Assembly (NCBI GenBank): GCA_002269645.1
Contig: NIVC01000636.1
Coordinates: 62,001 to 126,000 of the forward strand
From: Macrostomum lignano
Lineage: Eukaryota
Reading direction: 5' to 3'
Length of the DNA stretch: 64,000 bases
The notes beneath the pieces were generated by a model. The model saw nothing but the letters and a program-made list of their open reading frames with translations, was not told the DNA's origin and did no database searches. This document shows positions 7,293 through 57,716 of this stretch, one piece after another. How positions within the stretch are numbered: the stretch's first letter is position 1; each line of letters begins with the position of its first letter. The position numbers were made by a program, and so were the translations under genes.

Positions 7293-7334
7293 CTGACGGG
7301 TGGCCAGTGAACGTTTGAAGGGCGTTAGACAATA

Positions 7335-23582: not shown

Positions 23583-23685
23583 GACTTACATGTAAAAGAA
23601 ACCCTAAAGCAAAATTAACTCAACTTTGGGTAAATGGCGAGAGTAATTATGACTGCCTTATTAAGGCAAAATGCCTCATTATCTA
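23583..23685 (+). repeat. Second, more degenerate copy of the 28S-like repeat segment
   Basis: Shares the leader GACTTAC..GT.AAAGAAACCCTAAAGCAAAATTA and GGGTAAA.GGC..GAGTAA.TATGACTG.CTTAT.AAG.C.AAATGCCTC with 25146-25240. Confidence 0.7.
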
Positions 23686-24974: not shown

Positions 24975-25081
24975 GAATAGTCATTTTAGACAAGGACTAT
25001 ATTGAGCAGGACATTTTCTGCAATGAAATGAACAATTTGATGCTTGAAATCTGTCTCTTTCATGTTATGTAGACTTTTCAG

Positions 25082-25350: not shown

Positions 25351-27861
25351 CTTTTCAGATGGAGACAAGGGATGAAAAGTATAAAGAGGACACACTGAGT
25401 TTGCTTAGGAAGATGATTTACATGAAAGATGAAGACACTTATATCACATTCTTCAATTAATTTTGCATTGTTGCCAGCATACAACTGCAGCTATTACTAT
25501 TATTGCAGAAATTAACACAAGATTTAAGTCCAATGCCAATGGGTTGCCTAAAAGCTATAGCATGTAAAGCTCAGTGTAAAGCTATTTCTAATAAGCATAT
25601 TGGTTTCTTTTATTTAGATAGAACCAGTTGCTTTGAAAAAGGAATATATACTTTTAATCTTTTAATCAGTGTTCAGGCTAAACTGGTAGAAATAGGCCTA
25701 CAAAAACACAATTTACTATATATTGTTTTTCTTGGTATAAAGCTATTTTTAATAAGCATATTGGTTTTTTTAACTTAGACAAAAGCAGTTGGCGAAATCT
25801 AAAAATGTGGGATAAAATGGTAAAACAAAATGTTAAATATGTTGAAGAATTATAGTGTAAAGTTAAAGTTAAACTTTATAAAGTTAAAGTTAATAAAATA
25901 CATGATTATAGCTTTTCTATCATTTTCATTAGAGTCATTTTAGGTAGTAATTAAACTTACCATTTTAACAAATCATTTTATTAAAAATAAAGCTATACAT
26001 AAATAATTTGTGCTTTTATAGACTATTTTACCTTTTAAAAATTTAAATAAATTTATTTTATAGCTTTAATGCTTTCAAATTGCCAAAAAACGAATTTTCA
26101 TAAAACTTGCCCCCGATTTTTGGATTTTGCCAGTTGCTCTAAAAGTCTAAGAAAGGAATGCATTCTATTAGTCTGCAGTTTCTAGATAGCTCAATAGTAG
26201 GCCATAGTAGTGGAAATGAAGTGATTCCAACTATAAACTAACTAAATAGAGACTAGGCCCCTATAATAAGAAAGAATATATTTCTTAGCTATTTATTTAT
26301 ATTTGTACTTGTATTTATTATATTTCTTTGATCATGTGCATATAAAAACATAATGGATGATAAAATAAGAAATCAAATATTTATTAAATACAAGTTTATA
26401 ATGTAATGAGATAGGCCTAGTTTGTTTTTTAATTGCTTTCAAGAAACATAATTTGAAACTTCAAGGTTTAGTCCTATTGATATTGTTTATACCATAAAAA
26501 TTATATGCACAAAAGATGACTAACATATATATATATATAATTGTAATAACAATATAAGCCTAAAAATGTATATATACTGATAAGCCATACTACTCCAATT
26601 TCGTTTAGTTTTACATTCAATTTTGCAACTTAAAACTTATTAAATTTTTGAGGCGGTTTCATGCATATTGATTGCCCTTAGGCCTACACTATGCTACGAG
26701 TATAATATATCTTTGTAGTGTACCGTGACAATAAGTTCAAAGTTATTCTTACGGTACCGTGGGAATAATTTGGCCACTATACTTACGGTACTGTGACGAT
26801 AAGCACTGCCTTTTAATAACGATTCCAGGAATTACAATTCCAGGAAATTGTCTCAACCGTACAATTGGTTTCGTGGAAATATCTTATTTAAGCCTTCACT
26901 CAGACGGAATTTAAGCTGGACTTGAACATTTAAGTTGTAGTTGCTATATTTTAGCACAATAATTAAAGAATTTTAAGAATTTTAATTAAAAAACAGGACC
27001 TAAAACTAGTTGGTAAGTGCCACTACCGGAACTCGAACGTTTCTACGCATGCGGTTGTAAAAATGAGACAAAACAATCCGGAAGTCCTCGTTGTTAAAGA
27101 AAAACAAAGCCTACTAAAAATATAATAAATCTCATCTTTTGTTGCTAAAATTTAGTAAGCAGGAATTTTTTAAAGTATAATTAATAGCGTTAAGTGTATA
27201 CTAACTTAGCTAAAAAATGCTAGCTTCATAATTTTGTACGAAATTTGCCTTTTAAATTATTTTGAAATTTATTACTAAAATGTTTGAATTGACGATTAGC
27301 TCGCTCGATAGGACGGCTGACGAACTTTCATTTACTCATAGTCATTGTGTGTCAAATTATGCATGAAAACATGCTCCTTTATTAAACACTAAAATCGCCG
27401 TTTAACATAGCCGTCAGTAATTTCGCTCTGCAATTTCAGTTTTACCGTGTTTTTTTTGTTGAAAGAAGTTTTAAATGATATTTTAATAATATAGTTATCG
27501 AAGAAGTCGATTTTTTATTTAATTTAAAAACTTCATAGGCCATTTTTATTTATAATTCTAGTAACAAATCCAAAATTTAATTTGATATAATGTTTCTTCT
27601 GCTTTTTGTTGAACTCATAGATTTTTATAATGTATTCTTTTATTGTAAATTAATTTTTAAACAGTAAATTGTTGTCATGTAATGCCTAGTTATGTAGAGT
27701 TAGAATTTACTCTTTCTATCCTAGACGAAAGGAGTTTTATTGTTTATTAAAGTACCTCAAAGAAAACTTAGTTTTATCATTGTTTTATTTATATGAATTG
27801 GTTAAATACATCTTTGTATATTATCAATGCATTTACAATTTTTCAGCTTTTAAAATCAGCA

Positions 27862-30800
27862 ATGACATCACAACTTGTTGTTAAAACAAACTTCAGCCAG
27901 GCTACTGATGATACAAATTTGGTAAATGTTATTATTGTTATTTATTAGAAATATTCTATTATAAATTATGTAAGTTTTACTTTTACTTTTGAAGAAAATT
28001 AGATAGAGTTTTTATATGTAAGTTATAGCCTCTTTTTTAATTACATTGGTTTTGACCTCTATATTTATATTTGACTGCCAATTATAATTGTCCCACCTTG
28101 CAAAAAATATAAATCAGATTGCTATATTGACATTATCTATTTACTTGACCTACCTAATTGTCCCAATCAAATTGCAAATGACTTGAGATAGCTACTATTT
28201 ATAAGTGATCTGACCCACTTAACACCAACTAGTATCCCAACCCACTCAACCAATCATAGGCATCCCAACCTATCTAACCAATCATATGCACCTCAACTTA
28301 TCTAACAAATCATAGGCATCCCAACCTACCCAAATAATCATAGGTACCCCAACCCACCCAATCAATCACAGGTGCCCAAACTCACCCAACCAATCACATG
28401 TGCCCCAACCCACCCAACCAATCACAGGCGCCCTAACCCACCCAATCATAGGCACCCCAACCTATCCAATCACAGGTGCCTCAAACCACCTAATCAATCA
28501 CAGATGCCCCAACCCACCCAACCAATCACAAGTGCCCCAACCCACCCAACCAATCACAGGTGCCTTAACCTACCCAACCAATCATGGGCACCCCAACTCA
28601 CCTAACCAATCACAGGTACCCCAACCCACCCACTCAATTACAGGCCCCCAACCCACCCGACCAATCACAGGTGTCCCGACCTAACCAATCAGAGGTGCCC
28701 CAAACCCGACCAATCACAGGCGCCCCAACCCAACCAAACCAGTCACAAGCAATCTGACCCACCCAACCAATCGCAGGTGATCAGACGCATCCATGAGAAG
28801 TGCCGAGCAGTGCTGGCCACCATTGCCTACCTGCGGCGCATCTTCCTCCGCAAGGAGGCTCTGTCGCAGCTGGAGGCGCTGCAGTTTCTGCTGCTGGGTC
28901 AGCACCAGGAGATCATCCACGCTGTAAATGCTGTGTGCCATGAGCTCCTGCAGAAGTAAGTCCTCGAGATCGAATTGTCCTGTAAACTTGGCAGAATGCC
29001 ATGTTTGAGCTAGTCCGAGAGAGCACGAAGTGGCTAAAGCTAAGCGAGATGTAACGCTAGCGAATGTACAATGAACATGACACGCCGAAGTGCTCGCGAC
29101 AGCGAAGCTGATGCCATTCACACTGTTACAGTACTAGTTGTCATCAGTAGTACGTAACGATTGCCGCACTTTCCCGCAGGCAGCGCCAGGAGTTCAACAG
29201 CCTGATGTCAGCGGCCAACGGCACTCTGGCGGTGCTCTGTTGCTGGCTGGACAAGGCGCTGCTGTCCTCTGACGCCTTCAACCACATCGCTGGCAACGGC
29301 TTGATCAGCGGCTACCAGGGAAAGATTGAGGTGGGCTATGGTGTACTCAGGGACTGGAGACCGCTGAGGGACAGAGGGGCTGCGGACTGCTGAGGGACAG
29401 AGGGGGCTGGGACTGCTGAGGGACAGAGGGGGCTGGGGACTGCTGAGGGACAGAGGGGGCTGGGACTGCTGAGGGACAGAGGGGCTGCGGACTGCTGAGG
29501 GACAGAGGGGGCTGGGACTGCTGAGGGACAGAGGGGGCTGGGGACTGCTGAGGGACAGAGGGGGCTGGGACTGCTGAGGGACAGAGGGGGCTGGGACTGC
29601 TGAGGGACAGAGGGGGCTGGGGACTGCTGAGGGACAGAGGGGGCTGGGGACTGCTGAGGGACAGAGGGGGCTGGGACTGCTGAGGGACAGAGGGCGCTGG
29701 GGACTGCTGAGGGACAGAGGGGCTGGGGACTGCTGAGGGACAGAGTGGGCTGGGGAATGCTGAGGGACAGAGGGGGCTGGGGACTGCTGAGGGACAGAGG
29801 GGGCTGGGACTGCTGAGGGACAGAGGGGGCTGGGACTGCTGAGGGACAGAGGGGGCTGGGGACTGCTGATCAAAGTCCAATTTGGTATTGATTGCGAAAT
29901 CAATGCGTTGGATTAGTAACTATTTCAGTCATTAAATTATTAGTTTTTGTTAATATTCAATATTAATGTAGCAAAATTTATTAAGTTAAATGCATGCGCT
30001 TTGCTGGCTTATCACGTGACCCGCTACCCACCCCCCCCCAAGCCCTTCCCCCGCCGCCGGGCTTTCCGCACGGAGACCTGCAGGCGCTTCACTCCTGCCC
30101 TGCTGCAGTGAGAACTGGCGGGCTCTCCTGCGCCCCCACCCCTCCTGGCACAGCGGGGGGCCGCCTGCCTGTGCAAACAGCGCCAACCAAAGCGTGCTGC
30201 GTTTATTGTTTTAAACTGGTTGCCCCCCCCCTCACTGAGCCCCCCAGTCCGAGGGTGAGGTAAGGAGAGTGCCCGCGCGGCACCCAGCCTGGGCACTGCC
30301 AGCCTATTTAAGGCACAAGCGAAAGCAGAAATTCTCAGCGCATTCCCGAATCGGAAATCGGATTCTCGGCTCTGAGACGCTCCAACTTGTGCTGACATTG
30401 TTTAACTGGGTGACTCAGGTCTGTTTAATTTTGATCATCTGAGCCCATCTAACTTGTCTGTGTTTGCGTGGGCGGGGCGCCGAGCGGTCGTATTTTAAAA
30501 CCTGCGCTGCTGTTATCTCCGGGCTCTGACGCAACTCTTGGCCCGCGATTTCCGCGCACTGCAGCTTTCAATTGGCGATTGTCGGCCATGGCGCAGAAGG
30601 TAAAGCCTTTAAGCTGGTTTCTAGTTGTGGCATTAATCCAATCAAACTTGACAGTACGAGATTGTTCAGAAACTTATCAATATTGATTCTCAGATTCAGC
30701 TAAGCATAATTTTACCCGATTGACTTTTTGCCTGATCTTTTCTGAATTATTAACCCAGATTGGCCTACTTATAGTAGTGCAATATGTGCAAACAGTCAAA

Positions 30801-36800: not shown

Positions 36801-39800
36801 CACGAGTGCCGGCAGCCGAGGGCGGGACTCATCGTGCACCGCAACACCACCATCAGCCACACCGCTCGGGTCCGCCACGTGCCCGCCGCCTCGGCCGCCC
36901 AGCAGCCGCCGATCCCCATGGCTGACGACCTCGGCAGCGACGAGGACGCCGGAGTAGCACCGGCGGCGGCGGCGGCGCCCTCAGCGATGCCAGGCGGCGA
37001 GGACTCACTGTACGAGCAGCTGCCGCCAACCCCGCCGACCACGAAGCCGCTGTTGTCGGCGACTTCCGAGACGGCGGCAGCGGCGGCGGCGGATGCCTCG
37101 TCGGAGGAGCCGCTGGAGGCGTACTTCTACGACCAGCTGGAGGAGTTCCTGGTTTGGGACCCGGCCACTGACCCGGCCGTGGCGGAGGCCGAGGACCGAA
37201 TCCGGGTGCGGGCAGGGCCGCTGGACGCCCTGCTGGTGCACGCCTGCTGCCCCGCCACAGAGGGCGCCAGGCAGCACCTGCTGTTCTGCGAGAGCCTGGC
37301 GGCCACCTACCGCTGCTTCGCCAGCTCGCACGAGCTGGTCGGCCGCATCGTGTCGCGGGCGATCTTCTTCCTGGCGGCCGGCCGCGACCTGCTGTGGAAA
37401 CCCGCCTTCGCCTTCCTGGTCCGCGTGCTGGACGAGGTGCGGCTTGGGGCGCTGGCGAGGGGGGGGACTGCCAGGAGTACGAATCTCAATTAAGCAGATC
37501 TCCATTGAGCAGATCTCCATTGAGCAAATCTCCATTGCGCAGATCTCCATTGCGCAGATCTCCATTGCGCAGATCTCCATTGAGCAAATCTCCGTTGAGC
37601 AGATCTCCATTGAGCAAATCTCCATTGAGCAAATCTCCATTGAGCAAATCTCCATTGAGCAGATCTCCATTGAGCAAATCTCCATTGAGCAAATCTCCAT
37701 TGAGCAGATCTCCATTGAGCAGATCTCCATTGAGCAAATCTCCATTGAGCAAATCTCCATTGAGCAGATCTCCATTGAGCAGATCTCCATTGAGCAAATC
37801 TCCGTTGAGCAGATCTCCATTGAGCAAATCTCCATTGAGCAAATCTCCATTGAGCAAATCTCCATTGAGCAAATCTCCATTGAGCAAATCTCCGTTGAGC
37901 AGATCTCCATTGAGCAGATCTCGAGTAAAAAAATCTCAGCCAGAAATTCCGATTCCGATCTACGAGTAAATTCCAAAATGGCTACTGGCAGTAGGCAGAC
38001 CAGCGCTTTCTTTTCATCCCCATCAGGTCAGCTCCGAATGCGACCAGGAGATGCTGGACGACCTCGGCCTGCTCAAGCAGCGCCTTGTCGGCGAGGGCCG
38101 CCTACCGGAGGCGCAGATCCTCGCCACTGCGCTAGCCGGCGTGCGGCAGCGCCAGGCCGAGGCGGCCCAGCCCGACCCCGCTGCGGCAGCCGCCGCCTCC
38201 GCCTTGGCGGCACAACGGCGTAGCATCACCGACTTCACACCGCGTCAGCTGGCCGAGCAGATCACCCTCATGGACTCGCGCCTGTACAGGCGGATCGAGA
38301 TTCAGGTTCGCATCTTGTACATTGTCCCAGCTTTTGAACATTATCCCAGCTTTTTGCACATTATCCCAGCTTTTGAACATTGTTCCAGCTTTTGAACATT
38401 GTCCCAGCTTTTGAACATTGTCCCAGCTTTTTGAACATTATCCCAGCTTTTTGCACATTATCCCAGCTTTTTGAACATTATCCTAGCTTTTTTAACCTTA
38501 TTCCAGCTTTTTAACATACGAGCGTAATCCCAGCTTCCTGAAGATTATTCCAGCTTCTTAAACACTCCTAATTCCACCTGAACACTCCCACATCCTCCTG
38601 AACACTCCCACATCCTCCTGAACACTCTCATCCATCTGAAGACTCCCACATCCTCCTAAACACTCCCACATCCTCTTAAGCACTCCCACATCCTCCTAAA
38701 CACTCCCACATCCTCTTAAGCACTCCCACATCCTCCTAAACACTCCCACATCCTCCTGAACACTCCCTACCCCAGGAGTACCTGGCCTTCGTGCGTGGTC
38801 GCAGCCGGGAGCAGTTCGCCAACTTGCAGGCCTTCATCAACTCCTTCAACCGGCTGGGCTTCTGGGTGAAGACCCTGGTGCTGGGCTCAAAGACCACCAA
38901 AATGAAGGAGCGGCAGCGGCTGCTCAGCTATTTCCTGAAGGTGGCGGACGAGCTCAAGCGGCTGCACAACTTCAACTCGCACCTGGCCATCGTGTTCAGC
39001 CTCATCAGTCTGGACCAGCTGCCCTGGCCCGGCCGCTCCGTGCGCCAGCGGCTGCGTGCCCTCACCAGCTGCCTTGGCGACCAGGCCGCCTTTGCCAGGG
39101 ACTACTTCCGCAACATGGGCTCCACCGAGCCGCCGCTGGTGCCGCACGTAGGCGAGGTGCTCAAGTATCTCACGCGCATCCACGAGGGCGCTGTCGGCGG
39201 CGATGAGGTGTCCAGCCTCCCACCCGACTATCCGGTCAGCCGGGCCAAGCAGCTGGGTCTCATGCCCGTCATTAACTACTGGAAGTACTGGGTGTCCTTT
39301 AATTGCCTGGACTTCTGCATTCGGTTCAAGCGGTACTCGGCTAAGGCTATGTGAGTGGGCTTGACCACCCAGGGCTTGGCTACTCCGCATTTTGGGCCAT
39401 GGACAGTGGTATAGACAGAGCCATGGACAGGGCCATAGACAGGGCCATGGACAGTGGCATAGACAGAGCCATAGACAGGGCCATAGACAGGGTCATAGAC
39501 AGGGCCATAGACAGGGTCATAGACAGGGCCATGGACAGTGGTATAGACAGAGCCATGGACAGGTCCATAGACAGGGTCATAGACAGGGCCATAGACAGGG
39601 TCATAGACAGGGCCATAGACAGGGTCATAGACAGGGCCATAGACAGGGTCATAGACAGGGCCATGGACAGTGGCATAGACAGAGCCATGGACAGTGCTTG
39701 GCCACTCAGCGCTGACTGCTCCCCGCCCGCAGGCACTACCCTTTCGCACTGAACCCGGAGCTGCTGGCCTGCCTGAACAACTTCAACGACGCCCTGTCGG

Positions 39801-39853
39801 AGCCGGCTCTGAACGACCTGCTGGACCAGGTGCGGCAGAAGTACATGAAGTGA
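27862..39853 (+). CDS. RAPGEF1: Rap guanine-nucleotide exchange factor C3G-like; 9 exons 27862-27921, 28777-28955, 29180-29330, 32768-32814, 33194-33933, 36643-37436, 38027-38305, 38776-39350, 39733-39853; about 981 aa
   Basis: All exon phases join into one ORF (2946 nt). C3G-like N-terminal segment (LAVLCCWLDKALL), poly-Pro stretch, REM domain (VRAGPLDALLVHA...FCESLAATYRCF...FLVRVLDE), CDC25 domain (FTPRQLAEQITLMDSRLYRRI...SFNRLGFWVKTLVL...LKRLHNFNS...PPLVPHVG) and C-terminus LNNFNDALSEPALNDL. The AT-rich first exon is less certain. Confidence 0.85.
28235..28779. repeat. Degenerate minisatellite of about 28 bp (CCCAACCCACCCAACCAATCACAGGTGC) ending in the RAPGEF1 exon-2 acceptor
   Basis: Recurring CCAATCACAG|GTG; the last unit is CCAATCGCAG|GTG at 28776. 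Confidence 0.88.
29350..29868. repeat. 26-27-bp minisatellite (GGGACAGAGGGGGCTGGGACTGCTGA)n
   Basis: Visible array in a RAPGEF1 intron. Confidence 0.93.
30855..32145. repeat. 21-bp minisatellite (CCAATCCCGCTCTGTATCT[C/T][A/G])n, about 61 copies
   Basis: Near-perfect array in a RAPGEF1 intron; it explains the 436-451-aa spurious ORFs in three frames. Confidence 0.97.
33950..34790. repeat. 14-bp minisatellite (TCAGAG[T/C]CAGAGAT)n
   Basis: Visible array in a RAPGEF1 intron. Confidence 0.95.
36419..36651. repeat. 32-bp minisatellite, 7 copies, each containing a copy of the exon-6 3' splice site
   Basis: Unit TGAACCAGTTCACCCATTGTCACT[A/C]ATTGCAG; unit-terminal AG at 36450, 36482, 36514, 36546, 36578, 36610 and 36642. 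Confidence 0.93.
37492..37922. repeat. 15-bp minisatellite (CTCCATTGAGCA[A/G]AT)n
   Basis: About 28 copies in a RAPGEF1 intron. Confidence 0.95.
38330..38765. repeat. Two adjacent minisatellites of about 20 bp (AACATTATCCCAGCTTTTTG; AACACTCCCACATCCTCCT)
   Basis: Visible arrays in intron 38306-38775. Confidence 0.85.
39400..39695. repeat. 12-bp minisatellite (ATAGACAGGGCC)n
   Basis: Visible array in the last RAPGEF1 intron. Confidence 0.93.
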
Positions 39854-40624
39854 TGGAGAGCGACAGCTCAATGTAATTGACGTTCTGCAAGCCCTTCGAT
39901 CTGCCTCAGAACTGAAGATCTCGCAATGTAAATTTCTGTCTTTTTTGGCTTTCTTGTTCATTGTTAAACAGCCCTCGTAACAAAGTTTTTCGCATCACCC
40001 TGCTGGCTGCTGTTGAAGCACCAATGCACTCTGAATTCACAGACAAAAAATTATCTCACGCTTGTCACACCTGTTTATCTTTTGTTTTGTTAAATCTTAA
40101 TTTTAATGTCAATCGAATATTACTCATAGTAGCTCTTCGATTTATAAAGAATTTTCATGTCGCATATTCTAAGCATTGATCAGCAGCTTATACCTAAAGC
40201 TATTTATTATATAGTATTTACAAGTCTTGAGCAATACCTTATGAGCATATTTTTGATTCTAAGCAATTCCAGTGTTTTCAATATTTATTTTCCTAGCAGT
40301 GAGTCTCACTGCAGCATGTGTTAATTATTAATCACTGTTTCACCGTACTGCTGCTCGCCACCTGTGGATCTCCTGCCCTCTACAGCCCCCCCCCACCGGC
40401 GAGTTGAACTGCCTGGCACTGCGGACTCTGAGCAATAAATGAATTGTGCAGCTACCTGGCGCGGCCTGGCCGCTCAAATCTCCAAGTTTGATTTCTTGAG
40501 TGAACCCGACTGCTCAGCCAATGCGCTGGCAAAGAAACAGGGAGTTGCTTGATTGGTCTTATTTATTGACTGTGAGTTTAGCAGGTCTTTGCTTCAATTT
40601 GGCGTCAGTCATACAGGCCTTTGT

Positions 40625-40970
40625 CTGTGTCTGCCTGCCTGCCCTGCCCTGCCTGTCTGTCTGTCTGTCTGCCTGCATGTCTGTCTGTCTATCTGTCTGC
40701 CTGCCTGTCTGTCTGGCGGTCTGTCTGTCAGTCTGTCTGCCTACCTGTCTATCAGCTCTGGCTGTCTATCTGTCTGCCTGTCTGTCTGTTCGTCTGCCTG
40801 TCTGTCTGTCTGTCTGTCTGTTCGTCTGCCTACCTGTCTTTCTGCCTGTGTCTGTCTGTCTGCCTGTCTGTCAGTCTGTCTGCCTGCCTGTCAGCTCTGG
40901 CTGTCAGTCCGTCTGTCTGCCTGCCAGCCTGTCTGTCTGCCTGCCTGCCTGCCAGCCTGTCTGTCTGCGC
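40625..40970. repeat. (CTGT/CTGC)n microsatellite upstream of the metallothionein-like gene
   Basis: Visible low-complexity array. Confidence 0.9.
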
Positions 40971-41406
40971 CTGTTTTATGCCAGCCTTGAACTACATAAG
41001 TTACTTAAGTCCTTCAAGATTGCTCCCAACTCGTACAGTATTGCGACAAAAGTTTTACAGCTTAATAAAAGCAAATGAGGCTTGGCAAATCAAATGCGTC
41101 ACTGCAAATCCTCAGCCAAAACAGGCTGGTGCGGAAACCAGAGAAAAGACATAATTGTCACCCGAATCGCTCTGCTTTATCAGAGATAAACAGTGTGTAA
41201 ACAAGCATGCTCAGGGTCAGTCACATGACCGACTCACCTGGCTGAGGAGGCGTGGCCAGTACTTGGGGTGGCGGGCTGGTCACATGGGTGGCAGCGATAA
41301 AAGCAGCGGCATAAATAGAGCCGCCCCGCGGCCGGAGCCACGCCAACCTCTGCCCAGAATCCATCAAAGCATTCATCAGCTTGCAGAGCCAGCCTCGTAA
41401 TCAGCA

Positions 41407-41605
41407 ATGGACGGTGAGTGCTGAGTTGCCAGGTGCTGCCATTTTCAATCAAGTCGCAGCGCCTTGCTCCCAGGCTTTAACTGCTGCCCCCTCCTGACCC
41501 GCAGGTAAGTGCAGCAGCCCGCAGTGCCAGGACTGCAAGTGCGGCGCCGACTGCAACCCAGGCGGAGAATGCTGCAAGCAGAACGGCTGCTGCGGGAGCA
41601 AGTGA
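41407..41605 (+). CDS. Metallothionein-like small Cys-rich protein, 35 aa (exons 41407-41413 and 41505-41605): MDGKCSSPQCQDCKCGADCNPGGECCKQNGCCGSK
   Basis: TATA-like ATAAATAG at 41311, ATG GAC G|GTGAGT donor, CCCGCAG acceptor, stop TGA at 41603, AATAAA at 41688. Nine Cys in CxC and CC motifs, no aromatic residues, all Cys codons TGC. Confidence 0.75.
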
Positions 41606-42048
41606 AGGATCTGCTTGTCCTCGGATGCTCAAACTCTGCGCCATAGCCGTAACTGTATGAAATCAGCTTTGCCAATGCCAGCGCCCGAATAAATTCAACA
41701 ATAAACTGCCATCTCAGAGTTGATTTGCACCTCGGTGCTGACAAACTGCTTGAACCCATCGTTTATTGTTCATTCAAAAGTCCTGTATGTACTTGAATAG
41801 GTACAAGAGAAGATAGCGGCTGTACAAATATATCAGTAAATAAATATTAGCCTTGCAACTCAAGTCGACAATAGCGGTAGCTTTGGATGCCTGCATCGTG
41901 CAGTAAAATAGCGATATTTATCTGTGCTAGGAAACCTGGACTTGTAAAAGTGCAGAAAAAGACTGCTGGCTGTCCGGCTGTCATGGCTTGGAGATGCAGC
42001 GGTGCGGAGAGGGCACTGCAGGCACAGCCTGTCATGGCACGGCGGCGG

Positions 42049-42737
42049 TCACACAATCAGCAGCCACAGGCCGAATACGGCGGCGATCCACAGGAAGAGG
42101 CGGCTGGCCAGCGGCCCGAGCAGGTGGGCCACCTCCAGCTCCTCCAGGGACTCCTGCAGCTCCAGCGCCAGGTCTGGCGGATCAGCGGGGGATGGGCTGC
42201 GTTTTATTGAACAGGCAGGCACTAAGACAGACAGACAGACAGACAGAACAGAACAGACAGACAGAACAGAACAGACAGACAGAACAGATCAGACAGACAG
42301 AACAGACAGACAGAACAGACAGACAGACAGACAGGCAGACAGACACAAAACAGACTGACAGACACACCTGTCAGGGACAGTCCAAGGCCGCCGTTGTCCG
42401 ACGCCGTGTCGATTCCGACGGAAATGCGCAGGCCGCCCAGCAGGAGGTGCCGCTGGCCGCTCTGCTCTCTCAGCCGGTGGCCGCTGGGCCTCGGCGGCAC
42501 GGGCGGCCCGAGCTCGGGGCCGGATCGGCCGGAACGACCGTACACGGGGACCAGCGCGTCCTCGCTGATGGGGCCCTTGCACACCGGGCAGCTGGGCGCC
42601 TGCGGCCTGGCAGTGAGCCAGCGGTGCACGCAGGGCCAGCAGAACAGGTGGCCGCACAGGCTGACCACCGGCTCCGTCACCGGCTCCAGACAGATGTTGC
42701 ATTCGAACTCGTGACCTCCGTGAGCTGCTTCAGCCAT
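42049..42737 (-). CDS. RNF185: RNF5/RNF185-family membrane-anchored C3HC4 RING E3 ligase (exons 42737-42368, 42173-42049), about 164 aa
   Basis: FECNICLEP..PVVSLCGHLFCWPCVHRWL...CPVCK...LVPVYGR...PPRPSG, and C-terminal TM segment LASRLFLWIAAVFGLWLLIV*. Phase 1 junction. RNF5 versus RNF185 cannot be resolved. Confidence 0.85.
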
Positions 42738-42794
42738 CCTCGGGCATCCGGGGCCCGGGGGCTGCAAGCTGCGGCAGGTTCAGCATGAGGATGG

Positions 42795-43245
42795 GATGTT
42801 GGGATATTCAGAATGGATGTTGGGACATTCAGAATGGGATGTTGGGATATTGAGAATGGGATGTTGGGATATTGAGAATGGGATGTTGGGACATTCAGAA
42901 TGGGATGTTAGGATATTCAGAATGGGATGTTGGGACATTCAGAATGGGATGTTGGGATATTCAGAATGGGATGTTGGGACATTCAGAATGGGATGTTGGG
43001 ATATTCAGAATGGGATGTTGGGATATTCAGAATGGATGTTGGGACATTCAGAATGGGATGTTGGGACATTCAGAATGGATGTTGGGACATTCAGAATGGG
43101 GTGTTGGGACATTCAGAATGGGGTGTTGGGACATTCAGAATGGATGTTGGGATATTCAGAATGGGTGTTGGGATATTCAGAATGTGTTGGGATATTCAGA
43201 ATGGATGTTAGGACATCCACAATGGGATGTTGGGATATTCAGAAA
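42795..43245. repeat. 22-bp minisatellite (TCAGAATGGGATGTTGGGA[C/T]AT)n
   Basis: Visible array directly upstream of the RNF acceptor. Confidence 0.93.
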
Positions 43246-44022
43246 GGACTCAATTAACGCACCAGGAGGTCACGGTGACCCCACAGAAGAGCAATAGCAG
43301 AGTTATGTATTTAAATAAAAACAGCTTTGTCTCAATAAGTGTACGAATCTTCATTAGTTTAACAACAGGCGTCTGCCCAAAACACAGCAAGGAAAGCGAA
43401 GAAATCTGCAGCAGAAGCAGTACTGTCAGTAGTGCATAACATTTATACGTCGAATAAACTGTGCAAAAAATCAAAAAAATATTCGCAAGCGAGGAGCCCT
43501 CTGAGATCCAGCGGAATTTGCATGGCTGCTAAGCGAAGAGGAGAAGGGAGAGGGAGGAGAAGCAGACGGGAAGGGAGAGGGGAAGGCAGAGGGGAAGGGA
43601 GAGGGGAAGGCAGAGGGGAAGGCAGAGGGGAAGGGAGAGGGGAAGGCAGAGGGGAAGGGAGAGGGAGCAAGAGCTGAAAACCAGCTAGCCAGAGAAATTG
43701 AATATGAACAGCTGAAAAACTGTGAATAAACAAACGATTGCCACAAAGCATCAACCAAACTCATAAATAAGGGGGTCCGCTATGAACTTCCCTACCACAT
43801 AAAGTAAATACAAAAAAATGTATTAAACATAATATTTGAATATTTGAATGTACAGAAATTGTACACACGCAGACGCAGCTGAGGAAGTGCCAAAATGACG
43901 CAAACATGAGTGAGTGCTCAGACTCACACAGATGAGTGAGTGCTCAGACTCACACAGATGAGTGAGTGCTCAGACTCGCAGATGAGTGAAGGGGATGCAG
44001 CAACGGAGCCAACAGCAGCAGC

Positions 44023-46991
44023 TCAGACCCGCAGGATCTCCAGGCAGTTGCCGTAGCAGATGCCAATCCAGCCGTTGTGGGCGCTGCTCCACTGGATCTG
44101 GTTGATCTCGCCGGCCGCAGTGTAGGCCAGGATCGGGTCCTCCACTGCCCGCGGCATTTGCTGCAGGTCCCAGATCAGCGCCTGGAAGTCGTCCGCTGCG
44201 GGGCCAAGCAGAGCATGCGAATTTCTAATTGGCTTTGAATCGCTAGACTCGAGTCTGGCTCACCAATTTCAATTTCTAAATTATAATTCACCAATTGATT
44301 GATCCGAGCTCGCCATTCACAGTCCACTGTTCACCAATCACCCATTCACAGACCTCAGTTCACCAATCACCCATTCATAGAACAAAAGTTCACCAATCAC
44401 CCATTCACAGAACAAAAGTTCACCAATCACCCATTCACAGAACAAAAGTTCACCAATCACCCATTCACAGAACAAAAGTTCACCAATCACCCATTCACAG
44501 AACAAAAGTTCACCAATCACCCATTCACAGAACAAAAGTTCACCAATCACCCATTCACAGAACAAAAGTTCACCAATCACCCATTCACAGACCTCAGTTC
44601 ACCAAAATTCGCAGCCTTACCTGCAGTGCAGATGTGACAGGCGGAGTGTGGCGCCCAGGCCAGCCCGTTAACGCAGGCTCGGTGGTTGGTGAGGCGCGCC
44701 ACGGGGTGCAGGGCACGCGGGTGTCAAGGACGATCACCTCGGAGGCGTCCATGGCGAAGGTGGCCAGGTAGTTGGGGTCCTGCCGGTTCCAGGCGAGCCG
44801 CAGCAGCGGGCTGTGGCCGGGGTCCTCGTAGATGATGGTGGAGTGCTCCAGGTGACGCAGGTCGAACATCCGCACGGAGCCGTCGGCGCCGACGCTAGCG
44901 AACATGTCGCGACCGCCGCCCTGTCGGCTGAAGGCGATGTCGTAAACTTCTTTGTCGTGCGCAATCAGCTGGGTCTTCACGTGGCCGCTGACCACGCGCC
45001 CCACCACCTGGCCAGTCTGTAGGCGCGGAATGTGGCAGAGTTCGAGTTCAGAGGGTCGTCGCACAGAATAACGGAGAAGAGCTTTGGGTCAACTTGAGAG
45101 CGGATTGCCAGTCTGTAAGAGCAACTATCGTTAATTGGATAGGTTGGGTCAATGCTGGTCAGTCTGGTGGGTCAAGGCTGGTCAGTCTGGTGGGTCAATG
45201 CTGGGTCAGTCTGGTGGGTCAATGCTGGTCAGTCTGGTGGGTCAATGCTGGGTCAGTCTGGTGGGTCAAGGCTGGTCAGTCTGGTGGGTCAAGGCTGGTC
45301 AATCTGGTGGGTCAAGGCTGGTCAGTCTGGTGGGTCAAGGCTGGTCAGTCTGGTGGGTCAATGCTGGGTCAGTCTAGTGGGTCAAGGCTGGTCAGTCTGG
45401 TGGGTCAATGCTGGGTCAGTCTGGTGGGTCAATGCTGGTCAGTCTGGTGGGTCAAGGCTGGTCAGTCTGGTGGGTCAATGTTGGTCAGTCTGGTGGGTCA
45501 ATGCTGGGTCAGTCTGGTGGGTCAAGGCTGGTCAGTCTGGTGGGTCAATGCTGGTCAGTCTGGTGGGTCAAGGCTGGTCAGTCTGGTGGGTCAAGGCTGG
45601 TCAGTCTGGTGGGTCAAGGCTGGTCAGTCTGGTGGGTCAAGGCTAGTCAGTCTGGTGGGTCAAGGCTGGTCAGTCTGGTGGGTCAAGGCTGGTCAGTCTG
45701 GTGGGTCAAGGCTAGTCAGTCTGGTGGGTCAAGGCTGGTCAGTCTGGTGGGTCAATGCTGGGTCAGTCTGGTGGGTCAAGGCTGGTCAGTCTGGTGGGTC
45801 AAGGCTGGTCAGTCTGGTGGGTCAAGGCTGGTCAGTCTGGTGGGTGAAGGCTGGGTCAGTCCGATCTGTCAAGACTGAGTCAGTTGTCGGCTCGCACCTC
45901 GAGTCCCCAGATGGTGCAGGTGGTGTCGATGCTGGAGGTGCCGAGTATGTTCGGGTCGACTTCGTTCCAATCGAAGGAGGTGAGCGGAGCGCAGAAGTCG
46001 GAGTTCTTGTTGTTGTTAAGCAGGCACTCCAGCTTGGTCTCGGTGTCGGAGACGACCCGCCAGACCCGCAGGTAGTCGCCGCTGGTGGCCAGCAGGTCGG
46101 CCGAGCCGGCGGAGCCCTTGCTGTCGGGCATCCACATAATGCGCGTGGTCGGGTACGGGTGGTCGAAGGTGCTGCGGCAGGTCAGCTCTCCACGCTCGTC
46201 GTCCAATGCAACGATCTGCGGCGGGTGTGGGATTTTGATGTTCTTTAATGTCCTTTTAATATACTTTACTGTACTTTGGAACTCGCTCTCGCCAGCTTCT
46301 GTGCCAGGTCCGTCCGATTCCCGGACACTCACTGATTCACACATTCTGTCCGATTCCCGGACACTCACTGGTTCACACATTCTGTCCGATTCCCGGACAC
46401 TCACTGATTCACACATTCTGACCGATTCCCGGACACTCACTGGTTCACACATTCTGTCCGATTCCCGGACACTCACTGATTCACACATTCTGTCCGATTC
46501 CCGGACACTCACTGGTTCACACATTCTGTCCGATTCCCGGACACTCACTGATTCACACACTCTGTCCGATTCCCGGACACTCACTGATTCACACATTCTG
46601 TCCGTATCCCGGACACTCACTGATTGATGTCCCGGTCACTCACTGGTTCACACACACTCCGTCCCGGTCACTCACTGGTTCACACACACTCCGTCCCGGT
46701 CACTCACTGGTTCACACACACTCCGTCCCGGTCACTCACTGGTTCACACACACTCCGCCCCGGTCACTCACTCAGTCCATACTCAGTCAAACTCAGCAGC
46801 CAGCAGAGACCCACCTGCAACTTGTTATTGTACTCCTCAACAAAGGAGCCGAGCGCCAGCCGAAAGCCTTTGTCCGGCCGCACGGACCAGTTCATGCTGT
46901 ACACCGGCCAGGGCGCCTCGTACTTGTAAATTTCCTTCTTCTTGTGACCGCCTCCGCCACCGGCCTGCCCAGAGAGATGGTGGCCTTGCAT
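44023..46991 (-). CDS. DCAF7: DDB1- and CUL4-associated factor 7 (WDR68/Han11); exons 46991-46815, 46215-45898, 45016-44621, 44195-44023; apparent 1-nt frameshift near 44704
   Basis: Near-identity to recalled DCAF7 motifs [93 protein letters not shown] and CLEILRV*. Confidence 0.95.
44335..44605. repeat. 30-bp minisatellite (GTTCACCAATCACCCATTCACAGAACAAAA)n
   Basis: About 9 copies in DCAF7 intron 3. Confidence 0.95.
45140..45860. repeat. 23-24-bp minisatellite (GGTCAGTCTGGTGGGTCAA[G/T]GCT)n
   Basis: Fills DCAF7 intron 2. Confidence 0.95.
46310..46770. repeat. 36-bp and 32-bp minisatellites in DCAF7 intron 1
   Basis: (GTCCGATTCCCGGACACTCACTG[A/G]TTCACACATTCT)n followed by (CACTCACTGGTTCACACACACTCCGTCCCGGT)n. 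Confidence 0.92.
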
Positions 46992-48461: not shown

Positions 48462-51047
48462 TCAGTGCGCAGAGGCGGCCGTCGCTGCCGCGGAGGTGAC
48501 GGGCGTCTCGACACAGGCGCAGGCGGTCGGATTGACCGAGTCGTCGGCGGGGGACAGCGGGGAGTTCAGGAACGGCTGCAGGTGGATCTGCGAGTGCGGG
48601 GGACAGGGGCGACGCATTTAACTGAGTGACACTGAATGAGTGAGACACACTGAATAAGTGACACTGAATGAGAGACACACTGAACTGAGTGACACTGAAT
48701 GAGTGAGACACTAAACTGAGTGAGACACTGAATAAGTGACACTGAGTGAGACACACTGAATGAGTGACACACTAAACTAGTGACAGAGTGAGACACACTG
48801 AATAAGTGACACTGAATGAGAGACACACTGAACTGAGTGACACTGAATGAGTGACGCACTGTACCCACCTGTAGGTGCAGGTTAACCTCGCTAGCCCGGC
48901 TAAGGTAGGGAAAATTCCCCCCACTCTTGAGATGGGCCCGCTTGGCATCCGGGTAGCACTTGTAGGTCTCCTCGCGTACCCGGGATGTCAGCGCGTTGTC
49001 GTCGAACACCTAGCAAAGCAAACGACATTTTGATGCTCAGATGTGCACAAGTCATGCTACTAATAAACTTGTTAGTAGTAAGCAAAGAATAAGCCCGCCC
49101 TGTCTCTCACATCAATTAGAGTCACGGGCAAGCCCTGCAGCTTGTGCGGCTCAACATAGTCATCCTGGCAGTTGAGGGTGAGCCGGCTGGCCAGCTGCTG
49201 CTGGCTCAGGCTGTGCAGCGAGTGGTTCAGGAACAGCATGGAGTCCGCGATCTCCCGGTCCCGAGAGCTGATGCTGTCAAGGTTGTGCATCACCGTTGAG
49301 CGGAGCACTACAGCTGGCAGCAGCCAGAAGCTGTGGGATTGGGGATAACAACAGAAGGCTTACTGCCTCCGCAGTACTGTGGAGCAGCTGATTCCCCCTC
49401 CCCAGCAGCAGCAGCACTGTGGAGCAGCTGATTCCCCCCCCAGCAGCAGCAGCACTGTGGAGCAGCTGATTCCCCCCCAGCAGCAGCAGCACTGTGGAGC
49501 AGCTGATTCCCCCTCCCCAGCAGCAGCAGCACTGTGGAGCAGCTGATTCCCCCCCCCAGCAGCAGCAGCACTGTGGAGCAGCTGATTCCCCCCCCCAGCA
49601 GCAGCAGCACTGTGGAGCAGCTGATTCCCCCCCCCCCCAGCAGCAGCAGCACTGTGGAGCAGCTGATTCCCCCCCAGCAGCAGCAGCACTGTGGAGCAGC
49701 TGATTCCCCCCCAGCAGCAGCAGCACTGTGGAGCAGCTGATTCCCCCCCAGCAGCAGCAGCACTGTGGAGCAGCTGATTCCCCCCCCAGCAGCAGCAGCA
49801 CTGTGGAGCAGCTGATTCCCCCCCCCAGCAGCAGCAGCACTGTGGAGCAGCTGATTCCCCCAGCAGCGCTGTAGAGCCTACTCAACCCTACTCACGACTT
49901 AACGGAATTAGTCTGCTGAAAGATGGACGTCTCCACGAAGGAGTTGCAGAGCACCAGGGAGGCAACCCGCCTGGCCCGGCCGTGCTCCTGTTCGGCGAAC
50001 TTCTGCGCCAGGAAGCCGCCCAGGCTGGCGCCGAAGATGTGGACTCGCGCCAGGCTCAGGTGGTCCAGCAGCCGCTGGAAGCTGAGACACCAGTCCCCGA
50101 GGCTCCACACCACCGGGTAGTCCAGGGCGATGACGCGAAAGCCAAAACTAGTGAGGTAAAGCACCTGGCGAAAGAAGACCTGCGGCGGAACGAGGATGAG
50201 TTCATGTTGAGCTGGGATGGGTAGCAACTGCAGGGCAGCCTCCGATGCAGGCCTAGTTTTGAGCGTCAAACTTCATCTCTCAAACACTTCAGCAGTACGA
50301 GTAAATATCACAGCTGTCTGGGGCGATTCTCACAGCTGTCTAGGGGCGATTTTCACAGCTGTCTAGAGGCGATTCTCACAGCTGTTAAGGGGCGATTCTC
50401 ACAGCTGTCTGGGGCGATTCTCACAGCTGTCTGGGGCGATTCTCACAGCTGTCTAGGGGCGATTCTCACAGCTGTCTAGGGGCGATTCTCACAGCTGTCT
50501 AGGGGCGATTCTCACAGCTGTCTAGGGGCGATTCTCACAGCTGTCTAGGGGCGATTCTCACAGCTGTCTAGGGGCGATTCTCACAGCTGTCTAGGGGCGA
50601 TTCTCACAGCTGTCTAGGGGCGATTCTCACAGCTGTCTAGGGGCGATTCTCACAGCTGTCTAGAGGAGATTCTCACAGCTGTCTAGGGGCGATCTCACAG
50701 CTGGTTAGGGCAATTCAGACCAGCTTTTCAAGTAGGATTTTAAGCTGCAATTATTAGGGTTAGGGTTAGGGTTTATTGCAATTTCGGGAGGCTCACGAGA
50801 GACCTAAGAGACCATGAGGTACCTCGGCGGTGCCGGAGCAGGGCGGCAGGCACACCAGCGGGCAGCGCACGTGCCGCGGCCCGGCATCGTACATGCTCCA
50901 CTCCAGCGAGTCGTCATCGTCCACCACCACGCGGCGGTGCGCGACGGCGCTGCGGAAGCCCAGGTACTCCTCGGAGCGGAGGATGCCGCACGAGGCAGCA
51001 GCCGCCGCAGCAGCCGAAGCGGTAGATGCCGAGTTGGCGGAAGACAT
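48462..51047 (-). CDS. SPG21: Maspardin (alpha/beta-hydrolase fold); exons 51047-50823, 50179-49896, 49330-49111, 49009-48869, 48587-48462; 331 aa
   Basis: [35 protein letters not shown]|[64 protein letters not shown]|IHL. Exon phases are consistent (996 nt). Confidence 0.95.
48620..50700. repeat. Three distinct intronic minisatellites in SPG21 (48620-48860, 49375-49865, 50325-50700)
   Basis: Units ACTGAATGAGTGAC-like, CAGCAGCAGCAGCACTGTGGAGCAGCTGATTCCCCCC (about 37 bp) and CTCACAGCTGTCTAGGGGCGATT (23 bp). The span given includes intervening exons. Confidence 0.9.
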
Positions 51048-53160: not shown

Positions 53161-56100
53161 GCCCAATTGGAGGCATGAAGAAGCGCGCACAGTAGTGGCA
53201 CAAGAGTCAAGAGTGCATGTCCAGGGCTGAGAGTAGCCCTTAGCAGTTGAAACTTGTGCAAATCTTGGTTAAAATGGGATCAGTTAGAGCAAAAAATGCA
53301 CTAAGCCTATAAAATTCTGGAAACCAGGAACAAATAGCATCTGACTCTAAAATAATAATTATTTATGTTAAATTTTATAGATAACCAGAATATCAAGCTA
53401 CCAATTAAAGGTGTGAACCATTTCAACAATCAACAAGCAAAAGACATGTTACCACATTGGCTTATCCTTTCTGGCCCATGCCATTTATACTCATTACTCA
53501 AGATCAACCTTGGGTATACCAATGACTGTTTAGGCCACCTCAGCACTTTCTTTGAGATCCTGCAAATTGCCTAACATGCTCTAGACTAGTTGTCAATTGA
53601 ATTTGTTTTTTAATGATATTAGGATACATTGAAATACATTTGACAAATTATATGCTATTAGCAATTGTGGTAAATATAAAAATATACATTTTCCAACTCA
53701 ATGCTCTAAGTCAACCAATGTCTAGAATTTAGTGCATGTTTATAGGTTTCCAAAAAATACTTTAATAAGATCTGGTCATTTTTCCTATATACTAGAAATA
53801 AAACAGCAAAATGCTTCATATATACTATTTAAAAAAGTAAGTTATATGAATAATATAGGCATTAATGAAATATATATCAATTGCTATTTTGGGGTTTTTT
53901 AAATAATCAATTTAAAACACTTATGGAACAAACTTTAAAAGCTATAAATATTCTTGCTAGGCATCTAGAGAAATGGCACAAGTGTATAGGCCTAAAGACA
54001 AGGCAAATATCAAGAAAAATATTGGATTATTAAAAAAGAATTATGAAATAGAAACAAAGTAAGAAAATATATCACTTTGATAAGCTTTTATTGATTTGCC
54101 AGTGCCTATATAAGAGCAAATAAAAAAAGATGTGGAAACCTTATTAAATAGGCCTATACAATAGTATAAGAAAACTTGGATCCTAGGTGCATAGCTATAA
54201 AATTAGGGCTAGTCCTAAAGAAATATATTTTTATAATTATCTTAACTTTTAAACTTTTATAACTCTGAAAAAAAGTAAACATAGGCCTAAGATTTTATGC
54301 AATTTTAATTCAATTGTTTTATAGTGAACTACTAAATTAGTTTTAGTTATTAGATCTACTACTCTCCCAGTTAGCAAATTCTTTTGCCTTTGCTTTTAAG
54401 TTTGACTTACTATTTGCCACTAGGTATAGCTCCTTTTATTATATGCCTGTCTGATATGGCACTTATGTGTAGCCTAGCCTTCTTGTCACCATGTTGTTTA
54501 CTCTTTTGCCTAGGCCTATCTTGTCTATTTTTTTACTTATAACTATTGGTCATCTTTGCTTATACTTGTTTTTTCTTGGTACTTGCCCTTTGTCTAGTGG
54601 CCACTAGCTATTGAGAGTTTAAGTTTTTTTATTAATAGCTCAATTTTTTGTTTATCATATGATCTTGTCATGGCTCATTTTTTAATGGAAAAAGTCATAC
54701 TTTCATGCCATGGCCCATTGCCTTAAGACATAACAATAGCTAAAAATAGATAATATATTATTAATATATAATTTATATATTAGTTTCTTATTTTATATCT
54801 TGCTTTACATTGGCTTTTTGCTTTTTAGCTATAGAATAAATAAACCTTTTGCCTCGTAGTATAAGTATAACTAGTAATAACTAATAACTATACTCTATAG
54901 CTATTGTTGGCAAATAAAATCATTTAACATTTTGTTTAGTTTAACCATTTTATTCTCATTTATTATATCTCTTATCATATCTTTTATTTACTATTTTATA
55001 TATTTATTGTTTATTCATAAGCTTGTGCTTAGGCACATAGAGTTGGTTCTCATGGCACCAGAGGCGCAACCAAAAAATCGGTGAGGCCAAAGGCTTAAAG
55101 AAACCTATATACTAAATCAAGACATTTGGCTTTGGGTAAGGGGCTTGGGGGTCTGATTAACATTTTTTCATGTTTACCGAGTCTCCTCCTTGGTTGTACC
55201 AATGATCAATACTGCTTATGACTGTCTTCTGACAGTCTAGTTGAAATCAAGTTGGGTATAATATAACGACATGTTGGATTAAATCTCAGTTGGCTGAAGT
55301 CGACCGACAAATTTCTTAGAAAATAAACTGGTCGAAATCAACTTAAAAATCACGGGTAGAACAAAAGCCACGCTTTTAAAATATGTTATTCACAACTAAT
55401 TTTTTAAAGATATAGCTTATATTAGTTCCCATTATTTATGTGCATCAAATCAGTATAAACAGTAAATTTTGTCATTAATTTTGGCACAATATGTCCTGAA
55501 GACCCTTTGCGCCGATGAGCAGTGGCAAGTGTAGAATTGAGCAATGAATGAGTTGGGAAAGGTTTCAATCGAATGAATTCGTACAACTCAGTACAAGTAT
55601 AGTAAAGTGAGTTAGCCAGACAAAAACTGATACCACCTTAACATTTACAAACTAACCTAATTCTTGACAGCAGTGGAAGACAGTGATCTAAGAGACAGTG
55701 CCTTATGAACGCATTTAAGGTATATGAACAAATTTCGTGCACAAAACATATGCATGGTCTCGGTGGAGCATTTCTGGCTTTAGAATGAGACCATAATTTA
55801 ATGAAAGTTATATATACTCCCAAAATACATTTAAACTACTTTAAGGGCCGCTAAAGAACAGTTAAACTCTCCACGGAAATGAATTTGAGAGTCGAAAACT
55901 TATATCTACAGAAATTCGCTGACTGTCAAGCAACGGAACTATAAGGCGATGCCAGCTGTTCGTTCTACCTCGGTGGTAGGGCTGGCCGACGTCTGCCAGG
56001 ACCCGCTGCATCGCCGCAGGCTTGCTCGGGATGTAATTTCGCTCTGTGAGAGCGAGCCCTAGCTGCAGTCCAAAGCCCAAACAGCAAGTTGAAGCGGTGT

Positions 56101-56919
56101 GGTGCATGGCCTGGTCCGAATGCCGATGGTGTTGCTGGCAGGCCACATCATTCGCGCCGAGTCGTCGCTCTGTCCGCAGCCGATGCAAGAGACTGCTGCA
56201 ACCGTCGTGGTCGTCGCGCAATCGGCGTTTCGTCCACTGACACGGGCGACCAGGATTTAGTTGGCGACGCGGCCTATGTTCCTGCTGAGCCTTGACGCGT
56301 CCCTTTGAGGGGCCTTGAGGCAAAACGCTGATGATTGTATCAACTGACAGCGTATTTTGTTGTAGTTCTATCGCTTAATAGAGACCTAGATGTATTTAAA
56401 TGAAAAATTATCTTTCCATTTCAAGGGGGGATCAGTTGAACCTTGGAGAAATCCTGGATCCTCCTCTGAACTACGTCAGCAAGCCAGTCTGCAAGCTGGT
56501 CAGATGGTCAGTGATCATTATATACACCAAAATACTCTGTATCTTCATATCTTCATATCTTCATGGCATGAACACTAAATTAAAAATACTCTCAGTGTAA
56601 AAATACCAGTTTGCTAAATCATGCCAGCTTAAGCGCATGAATCAGTCACCGAAAAGCGAGTTCAGCACTTTTCAAAGTTGGCTGCACCCATTTCTCTCAC
56701 AGAGACCGAATTCTACGAGCCTTACACAATTGCAGCAGATCCAAAACTTCGTAAAAAGCACGATCGCTATTCAAAGCAATTTTCCGCAGCAAAAGCGTAT
56801 TCGCGTGCAGATAAGCGTCACCACATGCCGATCTTCCCATCCAGCATGACGATTTTGACTGCATAAATTCGTGAGCACTGAGGAAGACGAAACAAGCCTA
56901 AGTGAAGACCAGCACAAAC

Positions 56920-57716
56920 ATGCTGAAGCTGCTCATTGTCGCCTGCGCCCTCGGCCTGGCCTCGGCCATGCCCGACCCGTACGTCCTGTACGGTAGGACT
57001 GCCAGTCAGGGCCAGTTCCCGTTCGCCGCGTGGCTCGGTTCCTGCTCCGCCTCCATCCTGGACAGCCGCACCGTCCTCACCGCCGGTCACTGCGTGTGCC
57101 GCTCCAAGCCGACCTCCGTTCTGTTCGGCGCCGTTCAGGGCAACAACCCGGAGTCCGGCTCCCGGAGGTACAGCCTGTCTACCAGCCGGCAGGTCATCCA
57201 CCCGGGCTACACCAGGTGTGGCACCATTGGCAAGTGAGTATTCCACAAAGACGCTGTTTTGCTGGTTAGTTCTGCCGCTTTAGGTGTTATTGTTTGAACC
57301 AGATTCATTGGAAAAATACCGATCTGACCCACAGGGACGACATCGCCATCCTGAAGACCACCTCGGCGATCTCCTTCACCTCCGTCATCAAGCCCATCAC
57401 TCTGCACACCTCCGCCACCTCTGTCGGCCAGAGCATCACCATCGCTGGCTACGGCCAAGACGAGAACAGGCGGTCCGGCGTGCTGAAGTACGCCACTAAC
57501 ACCGTGGCTGCCTGCAGGCGCTTCACTGGTGCCGTCTGCCAGTCGATGAGCCCGAACAGCCCGTACTACGGTGACAGCGGTGGCCCGCTGTTCATCTCCG
57601 TGAGCGGCCAGCCCCGCCAAGTCGGTGTCGTATCCGGCGGTGACTTCACCAACAACCAGGCCATCTACGGCAACGTATACGGCAGCCTGAGCTTCATCCG
57701 CGGGAACATGGGCTGA
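56920..57716 (+). CDS. Secreted trypsin-fold (S1A) serine protease, 2 exons (56920-57233, 57335-57716), 231 aa
   Basis: Signal peptide MLKLLIVACALGLASA; catalytic triad motifs VLTAGHC, DDIAILK and GDSGGPL; phase 2 junction; AATAAA near 57751. Confidence 0.92.

Follow-up and report, generated by a model that had tools for sequence, protein, structure and literature searches.

A predicted 35-residue, nine-cysteine peptide gene as a candidate metallothionein of flatworm type, with an intron that may descend from a tandem duplicate

The window analyzed here, which is the whole 64-kb stretch of DNA, carries a predicted two-exon gene for a cysteine-rich peptide of 35 residues. The gene is present in one copy within the window; the unique sequence around it, an island of ~1.2 kb, has a (CTGT)n array on one side and the reverse complement of that array on the other (Table 1). 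The signals and the conservation described below make it highly probable that this is a real, spliced, protein-coding gene, and we infer from the sequence that it is transcribed and spliced at 41413/41505. The flanking (CTGT)n and (AGAC)n arrays form imperfect inverted repeats of up to 55 nt that are 78%–97% complementary. Antisense and neighboring small ORFs at 41155–42207 are without a family match.

Table 1. Features of the window and their coordinates
Feature	Position	Strand	Remarks
Exon with ankyrin repeats	2-577	-	
Exon with LDL-receptor class A repeats	6066-6695	-	
BTB/POZ ORF	15998-16624	-	
(CTGT)n microsatellite	40649-40967		Left border of the gene island, not part of the gene
Adjacent GATA-type motifs, candidate	41177-41189		TGATAA (-) at 41177, AGATAA (+) at 41184
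Palindrome-like E-box GTCACATGACC	41220-41230	+	Candidate cis element of low weight, 186 nt before the ATG
Second E-box, CACATG	41281-41286		Upstream of the ATG
TATA-like elements, putative core promoter	41296-41317	+	GATAAAA at 41296, ATAAATA at 41311
35-residue peptide gene, exon 1 coding part	41407-41413	+	ATGGACG: Met, Asp, first base of Gly
35-residue peptide gene, predicted phase-1 intron	41414-41504	+	91 nt, GTGAGT...CTGACCCGCAG, canonical GT..AG splice sites
35-residue peptide gene, exon 2 coding part	41505-41605	+	Residues 3-35 and TGA stop (41603-41605)
35-residue peptide gene, 3' untranslated region	41606-41705	+	AATAAA at 41688-41693 and 41700-41705
(AGAC)n array	42225-42364		Reverse complement of the left array; right border of the island, not part of the gene
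DCAF7/WDR68-type WD40 gene	44029-46943	-	Convergent toward the peptide gene
DCAF7 exons	~46943-46812, 46218-46108, 46098-45892, 45037-44616, 44199-44029	-	
Alpha/beta-hydrolase exon	49895-50272	-	
Trypsin-like serine protease, two exons	56902-57713	+	N-terminal signal-like MLKLLIVACALGLASA; Pfam Trypsin E = 6e-8, 1.3e-15
Ty3/gypsy-type LTR retrotransposon coding region	58942-62433	-	Split over several frames/ORFs
Retrotransposon integrase, H2C2 and rve	58942-59817	-	
Retrotransposon reverse transcriptase	60739-61488	-	Weak match
CCHC zinc-knuckle-like stretch CFCCGKPGHTKTEC	In ORF 61382-61768	-	

Spliced translation of the two exons gives exactly MDGKCSSPQCQDCKCGADCNPGGECCKQNGCCGSK followed by the stop, 35 residues in all, and exon 2 carries all nine cysteines together with the core CKCGADCNPGGECCKQNGC. 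The donor of the predicted 91-nt intron reads ACG/GTGAGT, and its 3' end is pyrimidine-rich, with a CTGAC branch-like site ahead of CAG/G. An unspliced start for exon 2 is ruled out because a TGA lies in frame upstream of it (41495–41497). The TATA-like elements stand 96–111 nt upstream of the ATG at 41407, which is the sole ATG within 41296–41420 and has the context GCAATGG (purine at −3, G at +4); the two AATAAA signals follow the stop codon by 83 and 95 nt. A two-exon gene with a 7-nt first coding exon, a TATA-like box, and a polyadenylation signal is what the original prediction had described, and the sequence and the predicted splice model agree with it.

The other coding features of the window are listed in Table 1. 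A DCAF7 exon has matches of 57%–92% identity in many animal phyla. The DCAF7 homology changes frame at 44702–44705, in a C run (TGCACCCCGTGGCG) where relatives read Cys-Thr-Pro-Val-Ala; the frame jump implies a 1-nt deletion, which would probably be an assembly indel or else the mark of a disabled gene. A probable indel of this kind in a conserved neighbor, of which the assembly has at least one, weighs to some degree against the peptide gene model. Assembly GCA_977066385.1 was considered as a relative and rejected: its DCAF7 exons have 77%–80% nucleotide identity to those of the window, but the protein is no closer than those of vertebrates. The sequence taken from that assembly is 39% G+C and contains no metallothionein-like ORF. 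At 640–11830 of its contig CDRUQA010000470.1, DCAF7 exons recur in two or three copies, tandem or nested, within 12 kb, and either gene duplication or an assembly artefact may explain this. In the window itself, A+T-rich islands (27%–38% G+C) occur at 8001–10000, 22001–28000, and 54001–56000 amid DNA of 50%–60% G+C, and tandem repeats lie at 62.6–63.7 kb, beyond the retrotransposon region. Rfam and tRNA scans of the window gave no match. Ten of its ORFs, looked up by exact sequence, are absent from the protein collection, and the BTB ORF has no record either.

A search of exon 2 (33 residues) against 1.84 billion representative proteins returned a single match (E = 3.8e-4, two matched stretches), the 83-residue hypothetical protein BOX15_Mlig008448g3 of Macrostomum lignano. 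This protein contains two modules, and pairwise identity to each of them is 63%–67% over 21–27 residues; the alignment score lies at z = 9.3 relative to 5,000 composition-preserving shuffles. Over a 19-codon core, pN is 0.12–0.15 per site compared to a pS of 0.61–0.92, with synonymous sites near saturation, in what is one comparison of short segments with a single homologue; the low dN/dS describes long-term history, with which a recent inactivation is compatible. On this codon comparison, the core of the peptide is shown to have been under purifying selection.

Base composition at third codon positions leads in the same direction. GC3 of the peptide gene is 0.89 in the proposed frame (nine of nine Cys codons are TGC and all Lys codons are AAG), compared to 0.88 for DCAF7 and 0.89 for the BTB ORF in the same window and a range of 0.79–0.90 across six coding stretches of the window, with the BTB/POZ, LDL-receptor class A, ankyrin, and alpha/beta-hydrolase pieces of Table 1 all inside these limits, whereas the predicted intron, read in the same phase, has a GC3 of 0.47. 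Of the numerous cysteine-rich translated frames in the window, every other one comes from a micro- or minisatellite; only the candidate is a non-repetitive, stop-free cysteine-rich stretch, and it alone carries the pattern C.C-x2-4-C-x4-7-CC. Because of the shuffle score, the low pN relative to pS, the GC3 match to neighboring genes, and the contrast with the intron, we regard the exon as coding sequence that is conserved and belongs to this genome. That the gene is real, as originally proposed, gains weight from a significant homologue with a conserved coding sequence.

The gene for BOX15_Mlig008448g3 occupies positions 10001–10252 of the related locus L001 (GCA_002269645.1, contig NIVC01000051.1). 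Its product contains the core CKCGxxCTPGG[DE]CCK[KR]N[GN]C twice, with a pS of 0.36 between the two modules. Common to both proteins are the core CKCGxxCxPGG[DE]CCKxNxC, a Met-Asp N-terminus, and the absence of aromatic residues. The genes are also alike in their 5' parts, as in the M. lignano gene, too, a TATA-like element precedes the ATG by about 100–110 nt; this ATG is the first after that element and has the context AAGATGG (purine at −3, G at +4). They differ in several respects. In BOX15_Mlig008448g3, an Ala/Gly-rich linker with an extra CC connects the two modules; this protein has 18 Cys and a single His in all, and CxC closes its modules, whereas the 35-residue peptide ends in CC; and the gene of BOX15_Mlig008448g3 is intronless with a GC3 of 0.61, compared to the predicted intron and GC3 of 0.89 seen here. 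Judged by codon usage, the window would probably stem from a related species and not from M. lignano. No nucleotide similarity or synteny beyond simple repeats was found between the window and the BOX15_Mlig008448g3 locus. Both loci are unusually dense in minisatellites of 12–35 nt. In the window, the extraordinarily dense stretch is 38315–45884 (units of 20, 20, 12, 22, 12, 26, 30, and 23 nt), with a 740-nt array of a 23-mer at 45145–45884, within a DCAF7 intron; L001 is alike.

Wider searches added no further members. A profile of both proteins run against 5.8 billion proteins recovered BOX15_Mlig008448g3 alone, the 35-residue peptide itself being absent from the collections. A search of metagenome contigs for related loci yielded 142 pattern matches, of which 0 were confirmed, and neither metagenome contigs nor prokaryotic genomes contained an exact match to a degenerate DNA pattern encoding CKCGxxCxPGGxCC (0 hits in each). 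The peptide and BOX15_Mlig008448g3 appear, from their sequences, to constitute a small lineage-restricted family, of which they are the two members known so far. A link to flatworms is plausible, given M. lignano as the source of the single relative recovered and the similar repeat landscape of L001. BOX15_Mlig008448g3 is itself uncharacterized, and hence provides no functional anchor.

What the peptide does has to be approached through its composition. Under a working definition, metallothioneins are mostly shorter than 100 residues and contain ~15%–30% Cys in CxC, CC, and CxxC motifs, with few or no aromatics; they are intracellular and bind metal ions in thiolate clusters of defined stoichiometry (PMC7826182). 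The peptide has 35 residues (~3.5 kDa), of which nine (25.7%) are Cys in the pattern Cx4Cx2[CxC]x3Cx5[CC]x4[CC]. It has no Phe, Trp, Tyr, or His, and no Leu, Ile, Val, or Met beyond Met1; the remainder of the chain is made up of K, G, S, N, Q, D, P, A, and E, the usual picture for a metallothionein. No hydrophobic stretch fit for a signal peptide is present (the highest mean hydropathy over nine residues is −0.19). The AlphaFold model of BOX15_Mlig008448g3 has low confidence (pLDDT 46.6), which is compatible with, and no proof of, a disordered apo-protein. Neither the 35-residue peptide nor the 83-residue BOX15_Mlig008448g3 matched any Pfam family at E ≤ 10, and a phmmer search of PDB sequences matched no solved metallothionein.

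The original prediction had read the peptide as a metallothionein of the beta type. The first half of this reading is sustained, in that the peptide agrees with the working definition in its composition and its Cys motifs; the beta-type assignment is not, as there is no detectable homology and CC doublets take the place of CxC. We therefore place the peptide outside any established metallothionein sequence family, as a candidate for a flatworm-restricted one, and lean modestly toward the view that it acts as a metallothionein. In that case, the nine thiolates would wrap a single metal-thiolate cluster. On the model of the 9-Cys domains of mollusc and vertebrate proteins (PMC7826182), this cluster would hold three Zn(II)/Cd(II) ions (M(II)3Cys9), or more Cu(I) ions; the ratio of nine Cys to three divalent ions is an analogy taken over from those domains. 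The peptide would be cytosolic, would buffer or detoxify metals, and as the apo-peptide would be disordered.

Instead of buffering metals, an expressed, flatworm-restricted cysteine-rich peptide could have its main role as a thiol redox or ROS scavenger, in the cross-linking or structure of a specialized tissue, or in a disulfide-bonded form. We judge this unlikely, although it would account for the lack of homology to any established metallothionein family, and CC doublets are known also from disulfide-rich or redox peptides. The conserved G, PGG, K, and N of the core suggest, moreover, a defined turn structure and not mere thiol spacing. An oxidizing compartment is itself improbable for a peptide without a signal peptide or hydrophobic segment, and a composition with no aromatics, in which CxC and CC are flanked by K, G, S, N, D, and Q, is typical of metallothioneins. 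Modular duplication, as in BOX15_Mlig008448g3, is also the usual course of metallothionein evolution (PMC7826182).

Upstream sequence bears on the same question. The absence of a clear metal response element (MRE), another point in favor of a role other than buffering, had been noted in the original prediction and holds for both strands of 40900–41720, where the core TGCRCNC does not occur. An MRE-driven metal response is typical of vertebrate and insect genes but is not universal, and it is not defining in lineages without MTF-1. Another motif, TCACRTGACC, occurs twice in the window compared to 0.14 expected, and twice also in the BOX15_Mlig008448g3 locus sequence, but it was picked after both promoters had been inspected. 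In the M. lignano gene it takes the form TCACGTGACC, 308 nt before the ATG, and it is on the sense strand at both genes. By a rough estimate, the sharing of a 10-mer with one transition is about what chance would produce between two ~400-nt promoters. Because the motif was chosen post hoc and its sharing is close to chance expectation, the E-box common to both genes is only a lead.

The predicted intron resembles the exon that follows it. The intron opens with GTGAGTGC and exon 2 with GTAAGTGC, the octamer GTRAGTGC being common to both, and the end of the intron (...CCCGCAG) corresponds to ...TGCGGGAG (GGAG) ~91 nt into exon 2, so that the length of the intron matches that of the putative duplicated unit. 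In a global alignment the two are colinear, with gaps, and agree at 60 of the 82 aligned columns (73%). The score has z = 4.15 relative to shuffles, none of 5,000 of which reach it, and only 1.2% of window segments of matched GC equal it. Read-through of the intron gives MDGEC-stop-VARCC...PGFNCC, a ghost of MDGKCSSPQC...PGGECC with a stop at codon 6.

A route from such a duplication to an intron is provided by the Rogers model, in which an intron is gained via tandem duplication of an exonic segment containing AG/GT. Under a scenario of this kind, a coding unit of ~91–93 nt with GT(A)AGT at its start and AG at its end would have duplicated in tandem, and the upstream copy would be spliced out and would since have decayed. 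A form of the gene without the intron would then contain ATGGACGGTAAGTGC uninterrupted, and module duplication would also have made the two-module BOX15_Mlig008448g3. The present case differs from the model in that the similarity is old and gapped, with moderate statistical support. We consider it fairly probable, from the alignment, that the intron descends from a tandem copy of the coding sequence that has since decayed, and such an origin fits both the intronless BOX15_Mlig008448g3 gene and the module duplication inside that protein.

The same resemblance between intron and exon 2 could have a less productive meaning. A partial tandem duplication might have broken an intronless ancestor, so that the "intron" is a damaged first copy and the downstream ORF is startless, the whole being a recently inactivated or never-expressed copy. 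The stop at codon 6 of the read-through, the lack of introns in the BOX15_Mlig008448g3 gene, and the position of the island amid unstable micro- and minisatellites are in keeping with this. However, the supposed damaged copy begins and ends precisely at a consensus donor (GTGAGT) and at a pyrimidine tract and CAG acceptor, and once it is spliced out, the reading frame is recovered along with the conserved Met-Asp start. In the downstream copy the ORF is still complete, with nine Cys and a GC3 of 0.89, whereas coding features are gone from the upstream one, and none of the TATA-like, Kozak, and poly(A) signals is missing. We regard inactivation as quite improbable. A chance ORF in G+C- and TGC-rich, repeat-laden DNA, an idea prompted by the many Cys-rich frames that (CTGT)n and other tandem repeats create in the window, is effectively refuted as judged from a non-repetitive candidate whose homologue keeps its non-Cys residues (z = 9.3, E = 3.8e-4), with dN far below dS and a third-position bias that resembles the host's and is confined to the proposed frame.

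Metallothioneins are notoriously overlooked by annotation and homology searches. Taken together, the spliced gene, its relative, and the putative origin of its intron raise the tentative possibility, on present evidence a rather doubtful one, of an unrecognized metallothionein family restricted to free-living (macrostomid-type) flatworms, which grows by duplication of a ~30-residue module and in which one duplicate has turned into a spliceosomal intron. If true, this would be a rare natural example of an intron whose origin remains readable in its sequence, and the duplication-derived intron, if confirmed, would be a clean case of intron gain. The sequence-defined candidate family also offers a concrete gene for flatworm ecotoxicology and metal homeostasis, with one member in the tractable model M. 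lignano. Its value is nonetheless moderate, as the function is entirely inferred and the protein class is well known.

Published work on flatworms is sparse in this respect. Parasitic flatworms appear to be without metallothionein genes and to rely on phytochelatin synthase (PMC3561135), and a planarian review mentions up-regulation of "MT" indirectly and with no gene description (PMC13253666). Searches of the literature on metallothionein in Platyhelminthes, Macrostomum, planarians, and Schmidtea/Dugesia found no flatworm gene described, subscription journals being outside their scope, and the locus tag of BOX15_Mlig008448g3 appears in no paper of the searchable literature. The view that flatworm metallothioneins are poorly documented, which the original prediction had put forward, can accordingly be retained, given the report on parasitic species (PMC3561135) and the lack of any gene description in the searchable literature. 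Metallothioneins have apparently arisen repeatedly in different phyla (PMC7826182).

Among characterized proteins, the closest parallels in layout are mollusc 9-Cys domains, each of which binds three divalent ions; their beta1 motif is [CxC]x3-4[CxC]x3Cx5[CxC]x3[CxC] and their beta3 motif Cx3Cx4[CxC]x3[CxC]x3[CxC]x2C (PMC7826182). As in the beta domains of the Helix pomatia Cd-metallothionein (6qk5) and of Littorina littorea (5ml1), the peptide has nine Cys in ~30 residues, and CKCG opens the central motif in both. The flatworm module [CxC]x3Cx5[CC]x4[CxC] equals the corresponding stretch of the mollusc beta1 motif in overall length, but the mollusc domains have CxC where the flatworm module has CC doublets, and the peptide resembles the beta1 and beta3 motifs only in part. 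Smith-Waterman scores against 6qk5 and 5ml1 (z = −0.2 to 1.65) are within the shuffle range, and the resemblance in Cys spacing may be convergent. Very short single-module metallothioneins exist elsewhere, in the fungal Neurospora-type Cu-metallothionein, the insect MtnA-type proteins, and the mono-modular proteins of ascidians. We take these to have no sequence relationship to the 35-residue peptide and a different Cys spacing; each is one free-standing metal-thiolate module of ~25–45 residues with 7–12 Cys.
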